Positions 26,826 through 46,021 of a stretch of DNA of 64,000 bases are shown piece after piece. The stretch is taken from positions 124,001 to 188,000 of the forward strand of contig NIVC01001256.1 of assembly GCA_002269645.1 (NCBI GenBank), in the 5' to 3' direction. A model generated the notes under the pieces. It saw only the letters and a program-made list of their open reading frames with translations. It did no database searches and was not told the origin of the DNA. The position numbers were made by a program, and so were the translations under genes. Source of the stretch: Macrostomum lignano (taxonomy: Eukaryota). Position 1 is the first letter of the stretch; the number at the start of each line of letters is the position of its first letter.

Positions 26826-28584
26826 ATGCGGCCATCTGGCGAACTCGACGGCATTGCAGCCGCCTTCTGGCCTCGGCGTCACGGGCGCCTTCGCTGGCGG
26901 CTGGTGCAGACTGGCGCGGCCGCCCTGCTGCTGTCCGCCCTGCTGCTCTACCTGACCTCGTCGTCTACCACCCGACATATGTCGGCCCTGTCAGCCTCGC
27001 CGACTGTCGGGCAGTCGTCTCAACGACGTCTCCTGCTGGAGGCAGCAGTGATTAACGAATCGGTTAACAGCAACTTGTCCGAGCGGCAGCTGCAGCTGAG
27101 CAGAAAATACTGGGCAAAGGTAGAGTAGGTAGAGTAGAATAGAGTGGAGAAGAGTAGAGTAGAGTAGAGTAGAGTAGAGTAGAGTAGAGTAGAGTAGAGT
27201 AGAGTAGAGTAGAGTAGAGTAGAGTAGAGAGGAGTAGAGTAGAGTAGAGTAGAGTAGAGTAGAGTAGAGTAGAGCAGAATAGAGTAGAGTAGAGTAGAGT
27301 AGAGCAGAGGAGAGTAGAATAGAGTAGAGTAGGGCAGAGTAAGATAGAGTAGAGTAGAGCAGAGGAGAGAGAGTAGAGTAGAGTAGAGTAGAGTAGAGTA
27401 GAGTAGAGTAGAGTAGAGTAGAGTAGAGCAGAGTAGAGTATAATAGAGTAGAGTAGGGCAGAGCAGAGTAGAGTAGAGTAGAGTAGAGTAGAGTAGAGTA
27501 GAGTAGAGTAGAGTAGAGTAGAGTAGAGTAGAGTAGAGTAGAGTGGAGAAGAGGAAGGTAGAGTAGAGTAGAGCAGAGGAGAGAGAATAGCGCGAGAGGA
27601 AAGACAGGATTACTGCCATGCTGAATTCAATTTCTGTTTGTTTTCCAGGTGCAGCTGCACTTTTCCAACGGCGGCGCCGACTCCCCACACTACCGGATGC
27701 TTGAGTCCCGATGCAGCGTCCCCGACAACGAGACCGAGCCGATCCAGGCGCTCCAGTTGCCCCCGACCGGCTTCTCTGACCACCCCTACCTGATCAACTC
27801 CGGCCCCTGCACCGGCCGCGTCTCCATCGTCCTCGCCGTTCACTCGGCCATCGGGCACTCGGACCGGCGCCGTGTCATCCGCGAGACCTGGGGCAGCGTC
27901 CGCTACGTCCGCGGCCGCCGGCTGCTGCTCGTTTTCTTTCTCGGCCGGCCGGCCGGCGACGCCGAGCAGCGGCAGCAGGCCGCAGTGGCGGAGGAGGCGG
28001 CCCGCCACCAGGACATTGTGCAGCGCGACTTTGTTGACAGCTACAGGAACATGACCATCAAGCACCTGGGCATCTACGACTGGCTGTTCGAGTTCTGCAA
28101 GTCCGCCGACTGGCTCGTCAAGGTCGACGACGATGTGTTTGTCGACGTCTTCCACCTGGAGGCGTTTCTCAGCACCTACCGGCCGGGCGCTGGGCTCTGC
28201 TGCAAGGTGCAGAGCGGCAGGCCGGAGCGAGTCCCCAGCGACAAGTGGTTCGTCACCAGGCGGGAGTTCCCCGGCGACAAGTACCCAAAGTACTGCGAAG
28301 GCTACGCCTACATCATCAAGCCGACGCTCGCCCGGCTGCTCTACTGGTGCTCCGTGTTCTCCAGACGTCTGTGGATCGATGACGTCTACGTGCTGGGCAT
28401 CCTAGTGCAGCGGCTGGGCCTCCGGCACCAGCCAGCCCTGCAGGGTCACCTGTGGGCCGACCTGCTGCCCAGCCACATGGGAAAGGCCATTGTTGATTAC
28501 GTCTTCCTGGTGGACAGGCACAACGGACTCCAGGCCAGCACCTGGCGGAGACTGCACAGGGCTGCTGTGAAGTACTCCTACTGA
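26826..28584 (+). CDS. GT31-family beta-1,3-galactosyltransferase-like type II membrane protein, about 409 aa
   Basis: Exon 1 26826-27119 carries the signal anchor AAALLLSALLLYL; exon 2 27649-28584; phase-0 join. Motifs: RR.VIRETWG, DIVQRDFVDSYRNMTIK, VKVDDDVFV, KWFV..EFPGDKYPKYCEGYAY, IDDVYVLG. Confidence 0.93.
27120..27590. repeat. (TAGAG)n filling the GT31 intron, starting at the donor GT
   Basis: aag|gtagag.. Confidence 0.97.
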
Positions 28585-29426
28585 CCTGCCTGCGCGCACA
28601 CAAGCTGCTGTGCGAGTGTTAATACGCGCATTAACAAACGTATTTATTTTTGTTAATATCGATAAGAATATTGTTTACATGTTGCAAAATAAATTTGAGA
28701 AAATAATTTTAGATTTCTTTTTATAGATCGATCGGTTTTATTAATCCGAAATTAAATTATCAATCACAATTTTCTGTCACTTTAGAGTCATGATTGCCTC
28801 CACCAAAAATGATGCCGACCAACTGATGCCACAGCAGCTCTGAAAGGAAGATTGTATAAATTATCGAGTGAATTCAGTGCACACAACCGGCGAGGGCCAT
28901 TGCTGCCCATTCCGCCGACTCCCCTGAGCAGGCGCACAAGCGCGCGGATACGTACGCAGGCACACACTCACACAGGAGTGTACAGCGGCCCTAACTTTAT
29001 TTATCGTTAGGCATGTACACTTCACTGCGGCTTGCGGGTTGGCCCTCAAGGGCGTTTAAAATTGCACGAGCAGAGCCAAGCCGAGATTCCAATTTAGCCC
29101 CAAATTAATGTGACTGCACTTGGAATCGAGCCTGGGCCGCTGGAACATCAGACCGCCGCGCTGGGCGTTAAAGATGGTTAATTATAATTATTATGGTTAA
29201 TGAAGAACGGTATTGAACGAGAAGAGAAATAAGGGGATTGTAGATAAGATTAGATAAGCTAACGAAGATAAGGTAAGGACCAGACCAGGGCATGGGGTTT
29301 CGGGTGGAGAGGCCAGCCCCCCATTTTAATAAGAGCAGGCTCTTTTTCAGCTGAGAATCTGGGACGCCCTGGGTGAAGCATGCACTGGTCAGTTGTTTCA
29401 AGTGAATGCTGACGCACCGCATTGAG

Positions 29427-30349: not shown

Positions 30350-31120
30350 TACAAATGGAAAAAGTTTTATTGGAAAGCGACGCCATAGACATTCAAGCCA
30401 GGCCACAGGCTCGGGCTGCTTGGGAATACACAACCATACGAGAGAATGTGGATTCGGTCGTAGAATGTGGAATGGACAATAAAAATGGGAAAATGCCATT
30501 CAAAACGGGAATTCGCCCAATTTAATGTATTTTTTATATCTCAGGGTCACTGGAATATTTAAAAGTGAACTAAGTGTCCGTTATCGGAAGCAAAACAAAA
30601 GTAACTCAGAACTCCTTGAGAGTCAGGAAAGGATTTTCATCGAGTTTCTCAACCAAGAATTCCCCCATTTCCTGATCGGCCTTGCACAATCCTTCTTTCC
30701 GACCACCGCGAGGAAGGGATTCTGCACTCTGCCATCGAGTCGAAAGTTGGCAGCGATTCGGAATGCGGTTGTTTTCTTGATTTGCAAGATTCTTGCAGCT
30801 CCTGCGATGCATGACCCTTGTTCAATCGCATCAGTCAGCCGCTGGCGATCTGCTAAAGGAATTGGTGGCGCCATTGAATGGGGTCATTTTCAGGCCAAAG
30901 ACGAGCAAACAGGGGAGGGAGGGACAGAGAGCTAAAAAATCTCAGTCCTATTCCCGTTTTGAATGGCTTTTTCCCATATTGAATGTCCAAAGTTATAGTC
31001 TATGGCCAAGCCTCCCTCAGTAGACTGCTAAACTGCTTAAGTCCATGACTAAGGGTGTGATCTGTGGCCTGGCTTGAATTTCTATGGCGTCTCGTTTTGA
31101 TTGTCCAAATTCCCATTTAG
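30350..31120 (-). mobile_element. Internally deleted Tc1/IS630-like DNA transposon with long imperfect TIRs
   Basis: Frameshifted HTH-type N-terminus on the minus strand (RQRLTDAIEQG..ARILQIKKTTAFRIA / LPRGGRK..DQEMGEFLVEKLDENPFLTLKE). Inverted matches: gacgccatagacattcaagccaggccacag vs ctgtggcctggcttgaatttctatggcgtc, and atgggaaaatgccattcaaaacgggaat vs attcccgttttgaatggctttttcccat. Exact ends not resolved. Confidence 0.7.
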
Positions 31121-31773
31121 ATCGACAAAACCGATTATTTATTTTCCATTTATACATGTCTAGGGCAATAAATGCAATAAATGAAAATCTAAGCGGGGTC
31201 TAAATTTATCCAAAAAACGGTTTTGCTGTCGATGGTCCAACTCTTCCTTGAATTATGGAAGCCAGAAATCCTGCTGGCGGATTGAAATTGTTTCGTTGAG
31301 ATGCTCTGTTGTCTATGGCCAACGTTTGAAGCCAACTGTACCCTTTAAACACAGAGAGATAAGTTAAGAGGAGTTAACAGAGATCAGGAAGATTCGGAAA
31401 TCTCTCTCGATCTGTTATAAAGTCGATATTTTCTGCCAAAGTAATCCAATGGTCGAAAGATTTCAAAATATAAACGAGAACGAATTTAACACAATCTTTC
31501 ATGGAGACATGCGAGTGGTTGGTAGCTCGTAGCCACGTTTAAGGAGTGGTACTACGAGGCGAAAAAAACAAACTCAGAGTTCAGGCGATGGACCTGCAAT
31601 GATGCATGGTTCTGAAAGAGATGGACGAGTTCACCAAGTCTGAATCTTAACTGGCTGATGAAAATGTTCATTCTGGAGGTGAGGGCTAAGCGTAGAGAGA
31701 GTTATTCAACTGGGACGTTGAAAGATTTCTATTCGTCGATTCAGTACTGAATTCATTGGTGCTGAATTATTCT

Positions 31774-32999: not shown

Positions 33000-34130
33000 G
33001 GGCTCTACGTCCAATCTGCAGCCCCCGCCGCAGCTCCTCGTCGCGGAGGGGAGCTTCCCCTGGGAGGAGTCGAAGAGCGCCGTAACCCGGACATCATGTC
33101 GTGAGTACGAATCGGTTTTACACCGGGGGAGCTAGTTCTGCGGCCCACTACCTCCCTGCTCTGCTGCTTAGAAGGGCCGGTGATATCGAGACGAACCCGG
33201 GGCCCGCGAGCAACTGCGGGCAGGTCGAATGCGGTCGGCCCCTGCGTGGCAGATTCCTGCACTGCAGCAGCTGCGGCCTCGACTACCACCTGAGCCGCTG
33301 GGCTGCGAACAGAGCGGTTGATGCTCCCAACTGGAGCTGCCGTGTTTGCGCCAACCGTCCTACAGCCACCCCTGTTGTTCAATCAGCACCAGAGCTGGTG
33401 GAGTCCGACTCGCCTCATCAATCCGAGAGTTGTGCTGCGCGGCGAGAAGCTCTGCTGTGCCGCCTTCAGCAAGACAAACCTAACTGCGCCAACTGCCGTA
33501 AACCCGTGCAGGTTAGCCCCGTCATAGCTTGCTGTTACATCTGTGAGTGCTTCTTCCACAATGCCTGCCCTCGCGCCACTCGGGAGCAGATTAAGAAAGA
33601 GGTCAGCTGCGGCGGTGCCTAAACTGCACCACGGCTGCCTGCCGCCCTGATGGGGGAGCTTAAGGATCTGGTCGTCCGTCTCAATGCGGACATTGCCACT
33701 GTTCAAGAATCCAACCTCACCTCTTTTAATAAGATGCCGAAAGTTCCTGGCTTCGTCACGGCGCGCAAAGACCGGAAGATATTCAGAATGGACCCAAACA
33801 TTAAGGTGGGGGATGGTCTCTTGTTCCTGGTCGCCGGAAGCTGCAGGGCTCGACCGGTGGCACGACTGAAGGCTGCCGAATCTCCATCAGCACGTCCGCC
33901 AGCAAAAAGATCGTCATCTCCAACATCTACCGCCCTCCGATCCGGCAGTCCGAAGGCACCGACCACCGTGAGCACCCGAGCGTTGACAGCTGGCTTCGGT
34001 GCTTTCAACCCGCTGTGGGGCAGCGAACCCCATCGCCTCATTGACTGGTGTACCACCACCAGCTACCGGATCCTGAATAATGAGCAGCACACGTGCGTAG
34101 ACCGGCGCTCGGGCCGCACCTCCATAACAT
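33000..34130 (+). mobile_element. Decayed 5' part of an APE-type non-LTR element (2A, PHD-like fingers, AP endonuclease)
   Basis: LLRRAGDIETNPGP; Cys/His clusters C..C..HCSSC..H..CRVC and CANC..CYICECFFHNAC; APE motifs DIATVQESNL and FGAFNPLWGS; frameshifts and stops present. Confidence 0.8.
33161..33205 (+). other. 2A (StopGo) ribosomal-skip motif LLLRRAGDIETNPG|P
   Basis: Exact match to D-[V/I]-E-x-N-P-G-P (D codon at 33182). Confidence 0.8.
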
Positions 34131-34629
34131 TTGTCAAATTCCAAGTTAAAAATTATAATAAATTATTATGCTTGTCAATTTAGCTTAGATCTACAAATAT
34201 GTGCATCTATAGCACAGGTATTATAATCCTAGATACTTGAATCTTTAGTTGATTCCACGGAAATCGCATCGCTCACTGCTAGAGCCTACTATCGGTGTAG
34301 TAGTCTGTACAGATATAACTATTATTAAGATGCACCAATAAATGCTGTAATCTCATCAGTCTGATTCAATGTTTTTGATAGTAGCTCGTAAATCATACTT
34401 GGATCATCAGATGTTGAATTAAAATGCGTTTGCACTGCTGAACTGACGAGTAGTTTATCGTCAACAAGCATTTGCGCACTTGTAGGGATTTTTCATCAAA
34501 AATGAGCGAAAAGCAATTGGAGAAGAAATTTAGCTTGAAATGTCTATTAACCACACTTAAATATGAGCGTTCATTTATTCAGAATATCTCAGCCAGTCGG
34601 GCGAGCTTTGATGTCTTCTCATCTCTGAT

Positions 34630-40586: not shown

Positions 40587-41336
40587 ATGAGGTGCGAATT
40601 AGCCGTCGCAATTCTGATCCTGAGCAGCCAGTTGGAGCCAGCCAAGGCCGTCTGTCCCGCGCCGTTCGCTACCGAGGCGGGCAGGTGTGTATTGATAAAC
40701 CGACTGCAGGCCTACAGCTGGTGCGAGGCCAACCTGCAGTGCGAAGCCCTCGGAGGCGAGCTCATCAACTCGTACAGCTCGCTGAAGCTGCTGGCCGACA
40801 TGCCGAGCTTTCAATGCGCCGACACGAGCAAGAGCAGCGGTGTGTGGCTCGGGGTGACCGACCTGGCCGAGGAGAGGGGGACCAACAGGTCCGGCTGGCA
40901 GCTGGGGAACAGGAACGGCGTACTGCCCCTGAACGACTCCCTGTGGTTCCCCGACACGCCCAGCAGCAAAAGCAGCGACCAGGACTGCCTGTCCACCTCC
41001 GACTTCTCAACTGAACTCATCGATCTGAAGTGCTCAACTCTGCGCGGATTTGCCTGCGAGTTCGTGGGAGCCGCGGCTCGGAATTTGACGGTGAGAGCCA
41101 CGTGGCGGCGGGTGCAGTTCAGGCGCTTGGACTTCAGCTCTGAGTATTGCTATGCGGATGTGCGGCGAGTGCTCAGCCCGATTCACTGCTTGGCGGCCGC
41201 CACCAAGGCTGGCAAAAGCAAGGACCTGCTGTACAACAGCAAGCTGAGGACCTGCCGTCTGCTGCTGTTCTCTGACGCCCAGGTTCAGGAGCAGATCGAG
41301 ACCAGCGCCGACTGGGTGAAGTTCAGCGCCTACTGA
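40587..41336 (+). CDS. Intronless secreted C-type lectin-domain protein with a degenerate PAN/apple-like C-terminal domain (249 aa)
   Basis: Signal MRCELAVAILILS..AKA; CTLD pattern CP..F....GRC, SWCEAN..C..LGG.L, VWLGVTD, WFPDTP...DCL, LIDLKC...FACE; tail C..A..LLYN..LRTCRLL. Confidence 0.88.
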   Translation: MRCELAVAILILSSQLEPAKAVCPAPFATEAGRCVLINRLQAYSWCEANLQCEALGGELINSYSSLKLLADMPSFQCADTSKSSGVWLGVTDLAEERGTNRSGWQLGNRNGVLPLNDSLWFPDTPSSKSSDQDCLSTSDFSTELIDLKCSTLRGFACEFVGAAARNLTVRATWRRVQFRRLDFSSEYCYADVRRVLSPIHCLAAATKAGKSKDLLYNSKLRTCRLLLFSDAQVQEQIETSADWVKFSAY

Positions 41337-41802
41337 CGCGCGAAAGGCCCCGATGCGAGTGGGTGTCCTGAATCAAATTCCACCAAAGCTCCGTTCTCTA
41401 AACGTTTCCCAAAGAGGCAGCCTTGCACCTGTCCGGTGCACAGGTTGTTGTACAAGTGTATCGATTTGTATTCTAACAAAATACAACTTGAGTACTCCAG
41501 CCATGTGAACTCCAGGTCTCCATGGTCTCTCCAAGATAATCGCATCAAATAAAAAATAAATTGAACATCATTTTTTGTTCGGCCGGGCAAAGTCAATTAA
41601 AAAAAACAAAGCAAGACTTTTTATCATTCCTATGTTGCCACGCGTTAAAATACTCGAAGTAATTTGTTTTCAACATATTAAGCGAAAGATACCACAGAAA
41701 CTGCGTTATGCGGCAAAAGTGACCGCATATGAATTCTTTGTCATCAGCTTAGCCGCATCTCGCCTCTCCACCTGCCGCTCCGCCTGCCGCTCCACCTGCC
41801 GC

Positions 41803-43372
41803 TAGTAGCTGATAGCTGGTAGCTGGTAGCTGGTAGCTGGTAGCTGGTAGCTGGTGGCTGGTAGCTGGTAGCCGATAGCTGGTAGCTAGTAGCTGGTAGC
41901 TGATAGCTGGTAGCTGATAGCTGGTAGCTGGTTGCTGGTAGCTGGTAGCTGGTAGCTGATAGCTGGTAGCTGGTAGCTGATAGCAGGTAGCTGATAGCTG
42001 GTAGCTGGTAGCTGGTAGCTGGTAGCTGATAGCTGGTAGCTGATAGCTGGTAGCTGGTAGCTGGTAGCTTATAGCTGGTAGCTGGTAGCTGATAGCCGAT
42101 AGCTGGTAGCTGATAGCTGGTAGCTGGTAGCTGGTAGCTGATAGCCGATAGCTGGTAGCTGATAGCTGGTAGCTGGTAGCTGATAGCTGATAGCTGGTAG
42201 CTGATAGCTGGTAGCTGGTAGCTGGTAGCTGATAGCTGGTAGCTGGTAGCTGGGTAGCTGGTAGCTGGTAGCTGGGTAGCTGGTAGCTGGTAGCTGGGTA
42301 GCTGGTAGCTGATAGCCGATAGCTGGTAGCTGATAGCCGATAGCTGGTAGCTAGTAGCTGGGTAGCTGGTAGCTGGTAGCTGATAGCCGATAGCTGATAG
42401 CCGATAGCTGGTAGCTGGGTAGCTGGTAGCTGATAGCCGATAGCTGGTAGCTGATAGCTGGTAGCTGGTAGCTGGTAGCTGGTAGCTGATAGCCGATAGC
42501 TGGTAGCTGATAGCTGGTAGCTGGTAGCTGATAGCTGGTAGCTGGTAGCTGGTAGCTGATAGCCGATAGCTGGTAGCTGGTAGCTGGGTAGCTGGTAGCT
42601 GGGTAGCTGGTAGCTGATAGCCGATAGCTGATAGCCGATAGCTGGTAGCTGGTAGCTGGGTAGCTGCTAGCTGCTAGCTGATAGCCGATAGCTGGTAGCT
42701 GATAGCCGATAGCTGGTAGCTGGTAGCTGGGTAGCTGGTAGCTGCTAGCTGATAGCCGATAGCTGGTAGCTGATAGCCGATAGCTGGTAGCTGGTAGCTG
42801 GTAGCTGATAACCGATAGCTGGTAGCTGATAGCCGATAGCTGGTAGCTGATAGCCGATAGCTGGTAGCTGGTAGCTGGTAGCTGATAACCGATAGCTGGT
42901 AGCTGATAGCCGATAGCTGGTAGCTGGTAGCTGGTAGCTGATAACCGATAGCTGGTAGCTGATAGCCGATAGCTGGTAGCTGATAGCTGGTAGCTGGTAG
43001 CTGGTAGCTTATAGCTGGTAGCTGGTAGCTGATAGCCGATAGCTCGTAGCTGGTAGCTGGGTAGCTGGTAGCTGCTAGCTGATAGCAGGTAGCTGATAGC
43101 CGATAGCTGGTAGCTGGTAGCTGGTAGCTGGGTAGCTGGTAGCTGCTAGCTGATAGCCGATAGCTGGTAGCTGATAGCCGATAGCTGGTAGCTGGTAGCT
43201 GGGTAGCTGGTAGCTGGGTAGCTGGTAGCTGATAGCCGATAGCTGGTAGCTGATAGCCGATAGCTGGTAGCTGATAGCGGGTAGCTGATAGCCGATAAGC
43301 CGATAGCTGGTAGCTGATAGCGGGTAGCTGATAGCCGATAAGCCGATAGCTGGTAGCTGTTAGCTGTTAGCA
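41803..43372. repeat. 7-bp tagctgg/tagctga/tagccga repeat
   Basis: Direct reading. Confidence 0.96.
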
Positions 43373-43740
43373 TGTATAAGGGACGAGAGTCGCATTTTCG
43401 GGAAACAAACAAGCGGTACACCCACATATAAAATGAAATTTGCCTTGTAAGGATTCCGGTAAAAGTCAAAACCAGTTAATTTTGCTAATCATACGTCCAT
43501 ATTTCAGATTTTTTCATATTACTAGGCACATAATTAGTAATTTCTGACACACTTCCAGTTAAGATTTGAGGAGCCCCTAATAAAGTGAAGATATTACGCT
43601 TGTGGAATCAGAATTTTATGCATAAATAGCCGATATTAATTTTATTAATGAATAAATATTTCCCAGCAAGAGTTTATATATAGCGTTATGATTTCCGAGT
43701 CCGGTAAATGTCGGGCTGACCTGCCACCAACTGGCGCAGC

Positions 43741-43986
43741 TCAAGGCACGACGGCTTTCGCCACCTTGCCAACCACCTTGAGAACGCGGACCACCTTCCT
43801 GAGTCGGATGCGCTTCTTGACGAGTCCTTCGTCGCGCTCCTCGGACAGGTCGGACTCGTCAATGTTGGACAGGGCCTCCAGGGCGGCCACAGTCTCCGCC
43901 TCCTCATCGGTCAGGTGCTGCTGGCTGGGCACGGCAGCGGCCAGGACGGCGCACAGCAGGAGGCCGAGAGCGAGCTGCCACTTCAT
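43741..43986 (-). CDS. Putative cationic antimicrobial peptide precursor (81 aa)
   Basis: MKWQLALGLLLCAVLAAA signal, then an acidic propiece (12 D/E), then GLVKKRIRLRKVVRVLKVVGKVAKAVVP (10 K/R, no acidic residues); AATAAA at 43641-43646. Confidence 0.85.
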   Translation of the reverse strand: MKWQLALGLLLCAVLAAAVPSQQHLTDEEAETVAALEALSNIDESDLSEERDEGLVKKRIRLRKVVRVLKVVGKVAKAVVP

Positions 43987-44741
43987 GCTGATTGAAGTAT
44001 TCCGGCTGTCTGTAGATGAGGCTTGGAGGAGTCTGCAATTGCTGGCTTGGTCCGCTAAGCAGTGCGGACTAAGCAGTGCTAAGCGGCGCATTTATGCACT
44101 CAAAACTGACACGTTTTTCCGGTTCGAAGGATCGACGCGCACTGCTGAGCTGCGGGCCGCACGTGAGCAAAGAACGAAGCGCTCTGACCCGCTCAGGACA
44201 AATATTTCAAACTACTGTATAGAATTCCGGCACACAGTCCCCGTTGTTTGTTAAAGGCTGCCTGACAAGATGCCACAGTGTCCTTTGTGCGAACTGTCAA
44301 TATTGACAACAGTTTCAGGGTGCCCTTTGCTATTTATCATTTCTTACAGTGCATTTGCTTGCTTTGCTTAGATTAAGCAATCCAAAGCAGCAGACACAAA
44401 AAGATGAGAAGTAATTTACGAGCGTACATAGTCTGTAATCTCAAATGTTTCACATTCCATTTGATGATGATGATGATCCTCATCATCCTCAGATGATGAT
44501 CATCATCATCCTCAGCTTCTTGAGCACTGCAGCGTAGCTCGCTGAACGCAAACTTCGACAAAGACTTGATGGAGCAGATCTCAGACTGTCACGTCAGCTG
44601 CTTGACGCCCCTCAAATGTTTTCTACTCACAGAATATTTGGAATCTTAAACCTCTCAAACCCTTTCATCAAGTCATGGCTTCGAGAAGACCTGCTTCCAG
44701 ACAGGCCCTGCTTGCTGAAAGGCGCAGACTTAGTCTTGACT

Positions 44742-46021
44742 CGGACATCCGATACAAGCTCTGATTCGGACACGGATACAAGCTCTGATTCGGACACGGA
44801 TACAAGCTCTGATTCGGACACGGATACAAGCTCTGATTCGGACACGGATACAAGCTCTGATTCGGACACGGACACAAGCTCTGATTCGGACACGGACACA
44901 AGCTCTGATTCGGACACGGACACAAGCTCTGATTCGGACACGGACACAAGCTCTGATTCGGACACGGACACAAGCTCTGATTCGGACACGGATACAAGCT
45001 CTGATTCGGACACGGATACAAGCTCTGATTCGGACACGGACACAAGCTCTGATTCGGACACGGATACAAGCTCTGATTCGGACACGGATGCACAAGCTCT
45101 GATTCGGACACGGATACAAGCTCTGATTCGGACACGGACACAAGCTCTGATTCCGACACGGATACAAGCTCTGATTCGGACACGGACACAAGCTCTGATT
45201 CGGACATGGATACAAGCTCTGATTCGGACACGGACACAAGCTCTGATTCCGACACGGATACAAGCTCTGATTCGGACACGGACACAAGCTCTGATTCGGA
45301 CACGGACACAAGCTCTGATTCGGACATGGATACAAGCTCTGATTCGGACACGGACACAAGCTCTGATTCCGACACGGATACAAGCTCTGATTCGGACACG
45401 GACACAAGCTCTGATTCCGACACGGATACAAGCTCTGATTCGGACACGGACACAAGCTCTGATTCGGACACGGATACAAGCTCTGATTCGGACACGGATA
45501 CAAGCTCTGATTCGGACACGGATACAAGCTCTGATTCGGACACGGATACAAGCTCTGATTCGGACACGGATACAAGCTGATTCGGACACGGATACAAGCT
45601 CTGATTCGGACACGGACACAAGCTCTGATTCGGACACGGATACAAGCTCTGATTCGGACACGGATACACAAGCTCTGATTCGGACACGGACACAAGCTCT
45701 GATTCGGACACGGATACAAGCTCTGATTCGGACACGGACACAAGCTCTGATTCGGACCCGGATACAAGCTCTGATTCGGACACGGACACAAGCTCTGATT
45801 CGGACACGGATACAAGCTCTGATTCGGACACGGACACAAGCTCTGATTCGGACCCGGATACAAGCTCTGATTCGGACACGGATACCAGCTCTGATTCGGA
45901 CACGGATACAAGCTCTGATTCGGACACGGATACAAGCTCTGATTCGGACACGGATACCAGCTCTGATTCGGACACGGATACAAGCTCTGATTCGGACACG
46001 GATACAAGCTCTGATTCGGAC
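44742..46021. repeat. 24-bp minisatellite gacacggatacaagctctgattcg
   Basis: Period 24 with three 2-nt indels. Confidence 0.97.

Follow-up and report, generated by a model that had tools for sequence, protein, structure and literature searches.

A Macrostomum-specific family of secreted prepropeptides and its candidate role as precursors of host-defence or membrane-active peptides in Macrostomum lignano

Does a short open reading frame (ORF) lodged between satellite arrays in a flatworm genome encode a real secreted peptide and, if it does, what kind of peptide is it? The question is raised by positions 43741-43986 on the minus strand of a 64-kb stretch of Macrostomum lignano DNA (GenBank assembly GCA_002269645.1, contig NIVC01001256.1, positions 124,001 to 188,000; the whole stretch is called the window below). 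A sequence-only reading had taken this ORF for a novel gene laid out like the precursor of an antimicrobial peptide. The ORF has 81 codons, runs from ATG to TGA and encodes MKWQLALGLLLCAVLAAAVPSQQHLTDEEAETVAALEALSNIDESDLSEERDEGLVKKRIRLRKVVRVLKVVGKVAKAVVP*; coordinates and sequence are identical to those first proposed. The first half of the question can be answered firmly: 43741-43986 (-) is a real, unannotated, single-exon gene and no chance ORF. Judged from its sequence, it is a member of a Macrostomum-specific family of secreted prepropeptides. For the second half, a precursor of a host-defence or membrane-active peptide is the best-supported reading, to which we would give about an even chance, and the original antimicrobial-type interpretation is partly supported.

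The evidence for a real gene begins with homology. A word-indexed phmmer search of 5.8 billion proteins returned 7 matches from M. lignano (E = 1.2e-14 to 3e-8), and an exhaustive phmmer search of 1.8 billion representatives returned 7 as well (6 from M. lignano and 1 from an unlabelled Logan contig; best E = 4.9e-14). The family profile search found 27 proteins, all from M. lignano except the Logan contig, with E values down to 1e-35 for relatives. A Pfam scan of the ORF gave no family at E <= 10. At the nucleotide level, the prepro coding sequence of the window gene is 76-88% identical to that of its relatives. The third-position GC of the ORF is 0.84 (0.74 and 0.37 at positions 1 and 2); the other two credible genes of the window, a C-type lectin and a galactosyltransferase-like ORF, have 0.83 and 0.89 at this position, and the overall GC of the 200-nt flanks is 0.55 and 0.38. 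Every residue that is invariant in the family is present in the window protein: M1, L7, G8, L9-L11, the ALEAL motif and the Lys of the cleavage site. Selection was quantified by the Nei-Gojobori method as the ratio of nonsynonymous to synonymous substitution rates (dN/dS), with the window gene set against 13 paralogous coding sequences. Locus L010, which encodes the family protein P0013, was the only relative whose tail could be aligned. The three segments of the precursor gave the following values:

Signal peptide: dN/dS 0.07-0.26 at dS 0.3-1.0
Propiece: dN/dS 0.6-1.0 at dS 0.3-0.6
Tail, against L010 (P0013): dN/dS 0.18 at dS 1.3

On these ratios, the signal peptide is under strong purifying selection, and the propiece is relaxed in sequence yet keeps its acidity. 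The low dN/dS on the signal peptide and the tail argues that the window copy has been kept by selection.

What kind of family does the gene belong to? It comprises at least 24 distinct proteins, all from M. lignano plus the one unlabelled Logan contig, and the deposited members are all named "hypothetical protein" in GenBank (identifiers BOX15_Mlig004661, 010792, 022076, 024774, 026085 and others). The claim of novelty therefore holds for the gene, which is new and unannotated, but not for the sequence, which is far from isolated since its family had already been deposited. The members have in common a near-identical signal peptide (MKWQLALGLLLC.., with the pattern M[KR]W[QE][LIF][AV]LGLLLC..), an acidic propiece with the motif ALEAL(S/A)N-DE, and an invariant Lys that ends a KK or KKK site. 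All the family genes are intronless, and they often stand in tandem or inverted pairs with 1.5-4 kb between the two copies. The window gene is single, unlike several of these paired relatives, and a tblastn search of the 64 kb returned the peptide gene alone. Synteny is not conserved between the family loci, where the neighbours vary (CRAL_TRIO, EF-hand, DUF1258). Three sets of NCBI models, P0001, P0009/P0015 and P0049, are chimeras that fuse two adjacent family genes (L003 10001-12935; L010 10001-14554; P0049), hence the duplicated propieces or two signal peptides in those proteins. The precomputed PF22991 "Lock_Gag1-like" label on P0001 was rejected, as it rests on a 17-residue match that is significant only through the chimeric duplication, and the UniRef name "SERPIN domain-containing protein" on P0004 is unfounded. 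The only member outside the M. lignano GenBank assembly lies at 541-813 of Logan contig SRR31628392_42504 (L011) and carries a Pro/Arg-repeat tail, FLRVRLPRVRMPRVRLPRVRLPRLRVRFRWSKK; because the contig includes the promoter motif described below, it is genomic DNA.

The closest relative by tail is BOX15_Mlig024774 (P0013, ..RKAIRVAGKVAKAVL; ending ..AGKVAKAVL), whose tail is homologous to that of the window protein. The proteins Mlig024774g1-g3 and Mlig026085 (PAA73004.1, PAA62922.1 and PAA68914.1; P0013 and P0014) are true homologues, themselves uncharacterised. They share with the window gene the signal peptide, the ALEAL propiece, the cleavage Lys, the single exon, the promoter motif and the C-terminus of the tail (GKVAKAVL in Mlig024774, GKVAKAVVP in the window). 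They differ from it in having only 55-59% overall identity and in the N-terminal half of the tail, which is WRRRRRFRWRKAIRVA as against IRLRKVVRVLKVV. In M. lignano Mlig024774 forms an inverted pair 4 kb apart, whereas the window gene is a single copy.

Conservation extends beyond the coding sequence. Alignment of the 160 nt upstream of the family genes revealed a conserved block, GGAAA[AC]ACGTG, followed by a spacer of ~12 nt and the TATA-like GCATAAAT, and this block probably acts as a promoter. The pattern GGAAAMACGTG-N(8-18)-GCATAAAT matches once in the 64 kb, without mismatch, and 0 times in 100 shuffles; the 31-nt match lies 104-134 nt upstream of the window ATG. The loci L001-L011 contain 17 family gene copies, and 14 of these have a single match upstream. 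The misses at L008 and L009 are due to one mismatch, and L002 keeps the TATA-like element only. When variants are included, the motif precedes the family genes in 12 of 13 loci, L002 being the exception; the variants of the distant subfamilies are GGAAAAACGTG..TATAAAT in L012 and GAAAACGTG..TATAAATA in L013. The family can thus be described by the motif GGAAA[AC]ACGTG-N-(GCA/TA)TAAAT placed ~85-135 nt upstream of the ATG of single-exon genes of 60-100 codons. At L004 a transcript-derived gene model begins 30 nt past the same TATA-like box, the distance usual for a start site driven by a TATA element, which by analogy would put the start of the window transcript near 44060. The predicted 5' untranslated region contains no upstream ATG. 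Past the stop codon, the AATAAA is the sole copy near the gene on the minus strand, at the distance reported before, and comparable elements follow the stop codon in paralogues (TTAATAAAATTG at L002 and ATAAATAAAA at L013). The parts of the gene, in the direction of transcription, are as follows:

44090..44120, minus strand: putative family core promoter, with GGAAAAACGTG at 44120-44110, a 12-nt spacer and the TATA-like GCATAAAT at 44097-44090
43987..44065, minus strand: predicted 5' untranslated region of ~75-80 nt, placed from the position of the TATA-like box
43933..43986, minus strand: signal peptide MKWQLALGLLLCAVLAAA, codons 1-18, more strongly conserved in the family than any other segment
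43819..43932, minus strand: acidic propiece, codons 19-56, VPSQQHLTDEEAETVAALEALSNIDESDLSEERDEGLV, net charge -11 by charge count, with the motif ALEALSN-DES
43810..43818, minus strand: basic processing site K57-K58-R59, with K58 invariant in 22 of 22 aligned members
43744..43809, minus strand: predicted mature peptide IRLRKVVRVLKVVGKVAKAVVP, codons 60-81, 22 residues, +7, 59% I/L/V/A
43741..43743, minus strand: stop codon TGA, from the translation of the ORF
43641..43646, minus strand: AATAAA within TTAATAAAATTAAT, a presumed polyadenylation signal 95 nt past the stop codon

Other frames at this position were considered and rejected. An extended ORF of 116 residues would begin at an in-frame ATG at 44091, which lies inside the TATA-like box. 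The overlapping ORFs 43688-44254 (+) and 43686-43907 (-) have no homologues; their GC by codon position is the pattern that the real frame gives when read out of phase.

The family alignment also informs the processing of the precursor. In the signal peptide M1, L7, G8 and L9-L11 are invariant and A18 is nearly so; by the (-3,-1) rule, cleavage would take place between Ala18 and Val19. In the propiece L36, E37 and L39 are invariant in a 15-member alignment, and L39 is nearly invariant among 22 members. The cleavage site of the relatives is KK or KKK, followed by F, W, I or L. A prohormone-convertase-type enzyme would be expected to cut at K57-K58-R59, and alignment with the subfamily that has KKK followed by I makes the bond after KKR, before I, the most likely cut. 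The charge counts on which the sequence-only reading had relied were borne out throughout: residues 20-54 hold 12 D/E and 1 K/R, the 28-mer from G54 (GLVKK..VVP) has a net charge of +10, the 22-mer after K57-K58-R59 has +7, and residues 20-81 sum to -1, so that the charges of the pro and mature parts nearly cancel. Counted from KK, the window tail has +8. As it lacks a C-terminal Gly, no amidation is predicted.

The structure of the mature peptide is less clear-cut. The basic residues of the 22-mer stand at positions 2, 4, 5, 8, 11, 15 and 18. The earlier reading of its alternating basic and Val/Leu patches as a helical amphipath gains only moderate support: at 100 degrees the Eisenberg hydrophobic moment reaches 0.51 in the 23-mer (z = 1.7, p = 0.06 against shuffles) and 0.47 in the 22-mer (p = 0.09). 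The moment is nevertheless maximal at 100-110 degrees and not at 180, which suggests an amphipathic helix. AlphaFold2, run on the 22-sequence family alignment, predicted helices at residues 4-18, 28-42 and 54-79, which we take as a hint only. A search of the PDB with the 23-mer found nothing at E <= 10. Of the precursor layout that had been called classic for antimicrobial peptides, the architecture stands, with signal peptide, anionic propiece, basic site and cationic tail, and is reinforced by the relatives; the amphipathicity of the helix is modest.

Beyond the cleavage Lys, the family changes its character altogether. The tails are hypervariable, mostly Arg-rich, and cannot be aligned between subfamilies. 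They span 6 to 38 residues and reach +14, and 19 of the 24 have at their C-terminus G or GK, as is usual for an amide donor; the tails of the window protein and P0013 lack such a signal. The following types were distinguished:

Short Arg/Val tails: FVRVRVRLG, FVRVRARIRLG, FIRARVRVRLG, WLRVRARVRIG, IFRVRVRIG, IFRVRARIHIG, IFRVHVRFG
His-alternating tails: FIHIHFG, GFHVHFHG, FHLHLPGK
Long Arg/Trp/Tyr tails: WRIRFRRIRIRWRRVYRVVRTAYRIYRHLPFPGK, WLLRRIRIRWRRVLRVASRVYRIYRYLPIGK, FRIRIRWGRVARNVLRLLGK
Pro/Arg tail: FLRVRLPRVRMPRVRLPRVRLPRLRVRFRWSKK
Two-Cys tail: WRIKSACKIFRRLLHLARKCYAKKG
Arg/Tyr/His tail: 38 residues
P0013 type: WRRRRRFRWRKAIRVAGKVAKAVL, with a C-terminus that matches the ..VVGKVAKAVVP of the window
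Non-cationic tail: AVYKPNYYKD

The short tails of the relatives (FVRVRARIRL and similar) have a 180-degree periodicity, that of a beta-strand, with a moment of 1.3-1.4. The proteins P0058, P0059/P0060, P0061 and P0012/P0016 carry near-neutral tails in which hydrophobic residues and His alternate strictly, with amidation signals, or which are of the Tyr/Lys kind. Judging from their composition, the His-alternating and Tyr/Lys tails could be pH- or metal-switched or self-assembling, and with such tails among its members the family, as read from the sequences, is not uniformly one of cationic antimicrobial peptides.

Is there any relation between a propiece and the tail that follows it? Their net charges are anticorrelated (Spearman rho = -0.83, p = 6e-7, n = 24 members, a figure that ignores the kinship among the members), and the window values of -11 for the propiece and +8 for the tail lie on the family trend. 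Within the closest subfamily, amino-acid changes are concentrated in the tail. Although the 110 nt upstream are 98-100% identical there, 4 of the 11 tail codons change an amino acid, compared with 4 of 53 prepro codons (Fisher p = 0.024), and a two-codon indel falls within the tail. A conserved cassette joined to a variable peptide is known from the antimicrobial peptides of frogs and Hydra, from venom peptides and from conotoxins. Taken together, the frozen signal peptide, the variable tail, the lineage restriction and the local duplications argue for an external, changing target rather than for a receptor-matched neuropeptide, although this pattern of evolution fits antimicrobial action and anti-predator, anti-prey or partner-directed action alike.

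Then, how would such a gene work as a host-defence or membrane-active precursor? A TATA-type promoter with its upstream GGAAAAACGTG element would drive a transcript of ~440 nt. The conserved signal peptide would direct the 81-residue product into the endoplasmic reticulum and would be cut off past Ala18. The acidic, partly helical propiece (-11) would neutralise the basic C-terminal part (+10) during transport and storage and might thus be protective. Cleavage by a convertase at K57-K58-R59 would free IRLRKVVRVLKVVGKVAKAVVP (+7), which would bind anionic membranes, probably as an amphipathic helix, and permeabilise them. Across the family, one secretory cassette with its promoter would have been reused for many different cationic tails: helical ones of 20-34 residues, amidated Arg/Val ones of 8-10 residues with a beta-strand pattern, a Pro/Arg-rich one and a two-Cys one. 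One cassette with many tails is what would be expected of effectors aimed at outside targets. On a wider and more tentative view, which we hold to be somewhat less than evenly balanced, Macrostomum evolved its own secretory-cassette family to launch structurally unrelated effectors (helical, beta-strand Arg/Val amides, Pro/Arg-rich, His-switch and disulfide-loop) as its main antimicrobial and microbiome-shaping arsenal, with GGAAAAACGTG as the immune or tissue-specific switch.

The window product has the hallmarks of a secreted cationic peptide as far as sequence can tell, namely a signal peptide, KKR and a 22-mer of +7 with 59% I/L/V/A. The antimicrobial peptides of Hydra and mesco-2 of a tapeworm, both compared further below, are precedents for the host-defence reading. 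Several observations weigh against a host-defence or membrane-active role. The helix amphipathicity falls short of significance against shuffles, the peptide is rich in Val, a weak helix former, and the AlphaFold2 model has a mean pLDDT of just 63, with ~67-73 in the tail helix and ~73 in the first half of the tail. The charge correlation takes no account of kinship. At pH 7 FIHIHF-G, GFHVHFH-G and FHLHLP-GK have no net charge, and AVYKPNYYKD does not fit a cationic peptide either. The short members that would end in ..RVRI- or ..RVRL-amide recall the FVRIamide-type neuropeptides of lophotrochozoans. The sole suggestive immune neighbour is the C-type lectin. Finally, the exact window protein is not in a collection of 15 billion proteins.

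The same precursor logic would serve a secreted peptide, membrane-active or bioactive in another way, that is directed at animals instead of microbes: a deterrent against predators, a prey toxin from glands of the epidermis or pharynx, or a peptide of the seminal fluid that acts on the mating partner. Venom peptides combine a conserved signal and propiece with a hypervariable mature part just as typically, and the cytolytic cupiennins of spiders derive from precursors with anionic propeptides (PMC7889660). The seminal-fluid version gains from the fast evolution of reproduction-related genes in Macrostomum (PMC7336406) and from the many putative seminal fluid proteins of this genus that are short secreted orphans (PMC5977470). 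No sequence feature separates animal-directed from antimicrobial action, however, and neither the main text of the searchable literature, where we looked for the family gene identifiers, signal-peptide strings and tail peptides, nor the supplements of two M. lignano expression studies, where we looked for the identifiers, contained them; we consider such a target unlikely. A neuropeptide or peptide-hormone precursor would explain why 19 of the 24 tails that directly follow a basic cleavage site end in G or GK. Amidated FVRVRVRL-NH2, IFRVRVRI-NH2 and IFRVHVRF-NH2 would then be akin in function to FVRIamide, GFVRIamide and RFamide, the -VRI, -VRL and -VRF amide C-termini resembling those of schistosome GFVRIamide and lophotrochozoan FVRIamide, and the window gene would be a long-tailed offshoot. 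Yet the mature part, usually the conserved one in neuropeptide precursors, is here the most variable and the signal peptide the most conserved. Each precursor holds a single peptide copy, the tails run from 6 to 38 residues and up to +14, the protein and profile searches found the family in Macrostomum only, the Gly needed for amidation is missing from the window peptide and from its closest relative, and not one of the peptide strings turned up in the searchable literature. This origin seems to us decidedly unlikely.

The alternation in the short tails, with its strong 180-degree periodicity, could also mean that the peptides are structural or self-assembling materials of mucus, adhesive or hardened structures. 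Such tails would form beta-sheet assemblies, the His-alternating variants would be switched by pH or metal, and the Tyr/Lys-rich AVYKPNYYKD would be adhesive-like. The periodicity of the window peptide peaks at 100-110 degrees rather than 180, and a structural material would need neither charge-matched propieces nor such sequence diversity, so that we regard this as highly improbable. A different kind of doubt concerns the window copy itself, which could be a silent or decaying paralogue of a family that is real. It sits in a unique island of 1.37 kb between a (GCTGGTA)n array at 41801-43371 and an array of 24-mers at 44737-46021, has no partner copy in the window, unlike several relatives, and its exact protein occurs in no annotation or assembly of the collection. 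Against decay stand the intact ORF, the promoter motif without mismatch, the polyadenylation signal, and the purifying selection on the signal peptide and tail in comparison with relatives at dS 0.3-1.3. The protein collection lacks all three credible window genes (peptide, lectin and galactosyltransferase-like), which probably reflects missing annotation rather than silence. A silent copy is therefore very unlikely in our estimate.

If the host-defence interpretation is right, what would follow from it? Little is known about which peptides act as effectors in the innate immunity of flatworms. What the searchable literature contains are in-silico screens of helminth parasites and a single cestode peptide that has been validated; on Macrostomum it has nothing, and a large in-silico screen of helminths never mentions the genus in its main text (PMC10414684). 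The present family would give a tractable free-living flatworm its first candidate family of effector peptides, the kind of system itself, prepro cationic effector peptides, being well known. Were the peptides antimicrobial, they would give M. lignano, a model with RNA interference and transgenesis, a defined effector set, and would provide a small natural collection of cationic peptides that spans several structural classes. The compact promoter of ~130 bp could be used as a reporter for the control of microbes in an animal without adaptive immunity. The family would also make a clean case of convergence on the design of a conserved prepro cassette plus a hypervariable peptide. Should the peptides not be antimicrobial, what we describe is still an expanded, fast-evolving, lineage-restricted secreted family that is annotated only as hypothetical proteins.

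The remainder of the window is rich in repeats. High-scoring micro- and minisatellite arrays make up ~37.5% of it and give rise to many long spurious ORFs; scans of the window with Rfam and for tRNAs gave no match. The C-type lectin is a single-exon ORF of 249 residues at 40587-41336 (+), with an N-terminal signal-like segment and a PF00059 domain (E = 3.6e-6). It faces the peptide gene in convergent orientation at a distance of 2.4 kb, with the (GCTGGTA)n array in between, and no record of the exact protein was found. The lectin could be a neighbour of immune type; other family loci are without a nearby lectin and, because the neighbours vary by locus, the lectin is no family-wide partner. 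The beta-1,3-galactosyltransferase-like ORF lies at 27649-28584 (+) (PF01762, E = 1e-41); its best relative, on a Logan contig, is 44% identical, followed by one from Fasciola hepatica with 40%, and no M. lignano protein was found. At 33101-33622 (+) an ORF contains a near-perfect 2A "ribosome-skipping" motif, ALLLRRAGDIETNPGP, at about 33182, and the adjacent ORF at 33650-34183 (+) begins like an AP-endonuclease (..IATVQESNL..). Pfam gave no match on either. From these sequence features, the pair at 33101-34183 looks like the 5' part of a non-long-terminal-repeat retrotransposon with an N-terminal 2A peptide. Short interspersed repeats at 28879-29162 (+) and 30924-31134 have 88-91% identity with copies at several M. 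lignano loci, and the window copy of this element shares variants with different M. lignano copies, which points to one and the same species or to a very close relative.

How does the Macrostomum family compare with the peptide systems that are already known? By Pfam, PDB and three protein-database searches, no known antimicrobial peptide, toxin or neuropeptide family is homologous to it at the sequence level. Cathelicidins have a cathelin-like proregion with four conserved Cys; the window propiece has no Cys, and Pfam gave no match at E <= 10. Homology to the helminth defence molecules (HDM or Sm16-like proteins, FhHDM-1-type) was likewise not found, as the protein and profile searches returned no trematode match. 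In frogs, preprodermaseptins combine a conserved signal peptide and acidic propiece with a basic site and a hypervariable C-terminal mature peptide, frequently amidated from Gly, and their genes have an intron after the signal-peptide exon and a KR cleavage site. The Macrostomum cassette follows the same logic, but its genes are intronless with a KK or KKK site (KKR in the window copy); there is no sequence similarity to preprodermaseptins, and the protein and profile searches found no amphibian homologue. Honeybee prepromelittin joins a signal peptide and an acidic propeptide to a membrane-active peptide that is cationic and amphipathic, and the cupiennins are laid out in the same way (PMC7889660). 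Both differ from the present family in that homology is absent, that they are processed through a quadruplet motif or by dipeptidyl peptidase steps, and that some cupiennin precursors hold several peptides.

Closer in lineage are Mesco-1/2/3 of the tapeworm Mesocestoides corti, flatworm products of short intronless genes that combine a signal peptide with a strongly cationic peptide, which turns helical on anionic membranes. Mesco-2, whose intronless gene encodes a signal peptide, is a validated antibacterial and differs in its GRGIGRG kink and disulfide-bridged C-terminal tail (PMC11546468); no mesco or other cestode protein appeared in the protein and profile searches. As for FVRIamide, GFVRIamide (NPP-1) and the RFamides, the short members of the family would end in -RVRI, -RVRL or -VRF amide past a basic site, whereas the window precursor departs from the FVRIamide, NPP-1 and FMRFamide-like pattern with a tail of 22 residues that ends in ..AVVP, is the only peptide of its precursor and is the least conserved part. 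We regard the arminins of Hydra as the nearest functional analogue, a matter of analogy and not of homology. Kinship was rejected, since the likeness is compositional only: BLASTP against arminin 1a-C gave E = 2.0 and 3.6, and the protein and profile searches returned no cnidarian match. The phylum differs as well. The antimicrobial peptides of Hydra are confined to the genus, have a bipartite distribution of charge and come from tandem paralogues (PMC10945409), and arminin 1a-C, KPWRFRRAIRRVRWRKVAPYIPFVVKTVGKK-NH2, is an Arg/Trp/Val-rich amidated C-terminal peptide (PMC10945409; PMC6217004 Table 1) with a composition very close to that of family tails such as WRIRFRRIRIRWRRV... Like the arminins, the Macrostomum peptides come from genus-restricted tandem paralogues and have a signal peptide, a negative and a positive half, and a cationic C-terminus, often with an amidation signal. 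If the secretory cassette does launch an antimicrobial arsenal, the family would match frog dermaseptins, cathelicidins and Hydra arminins by convergence, in a genetically tractable model.

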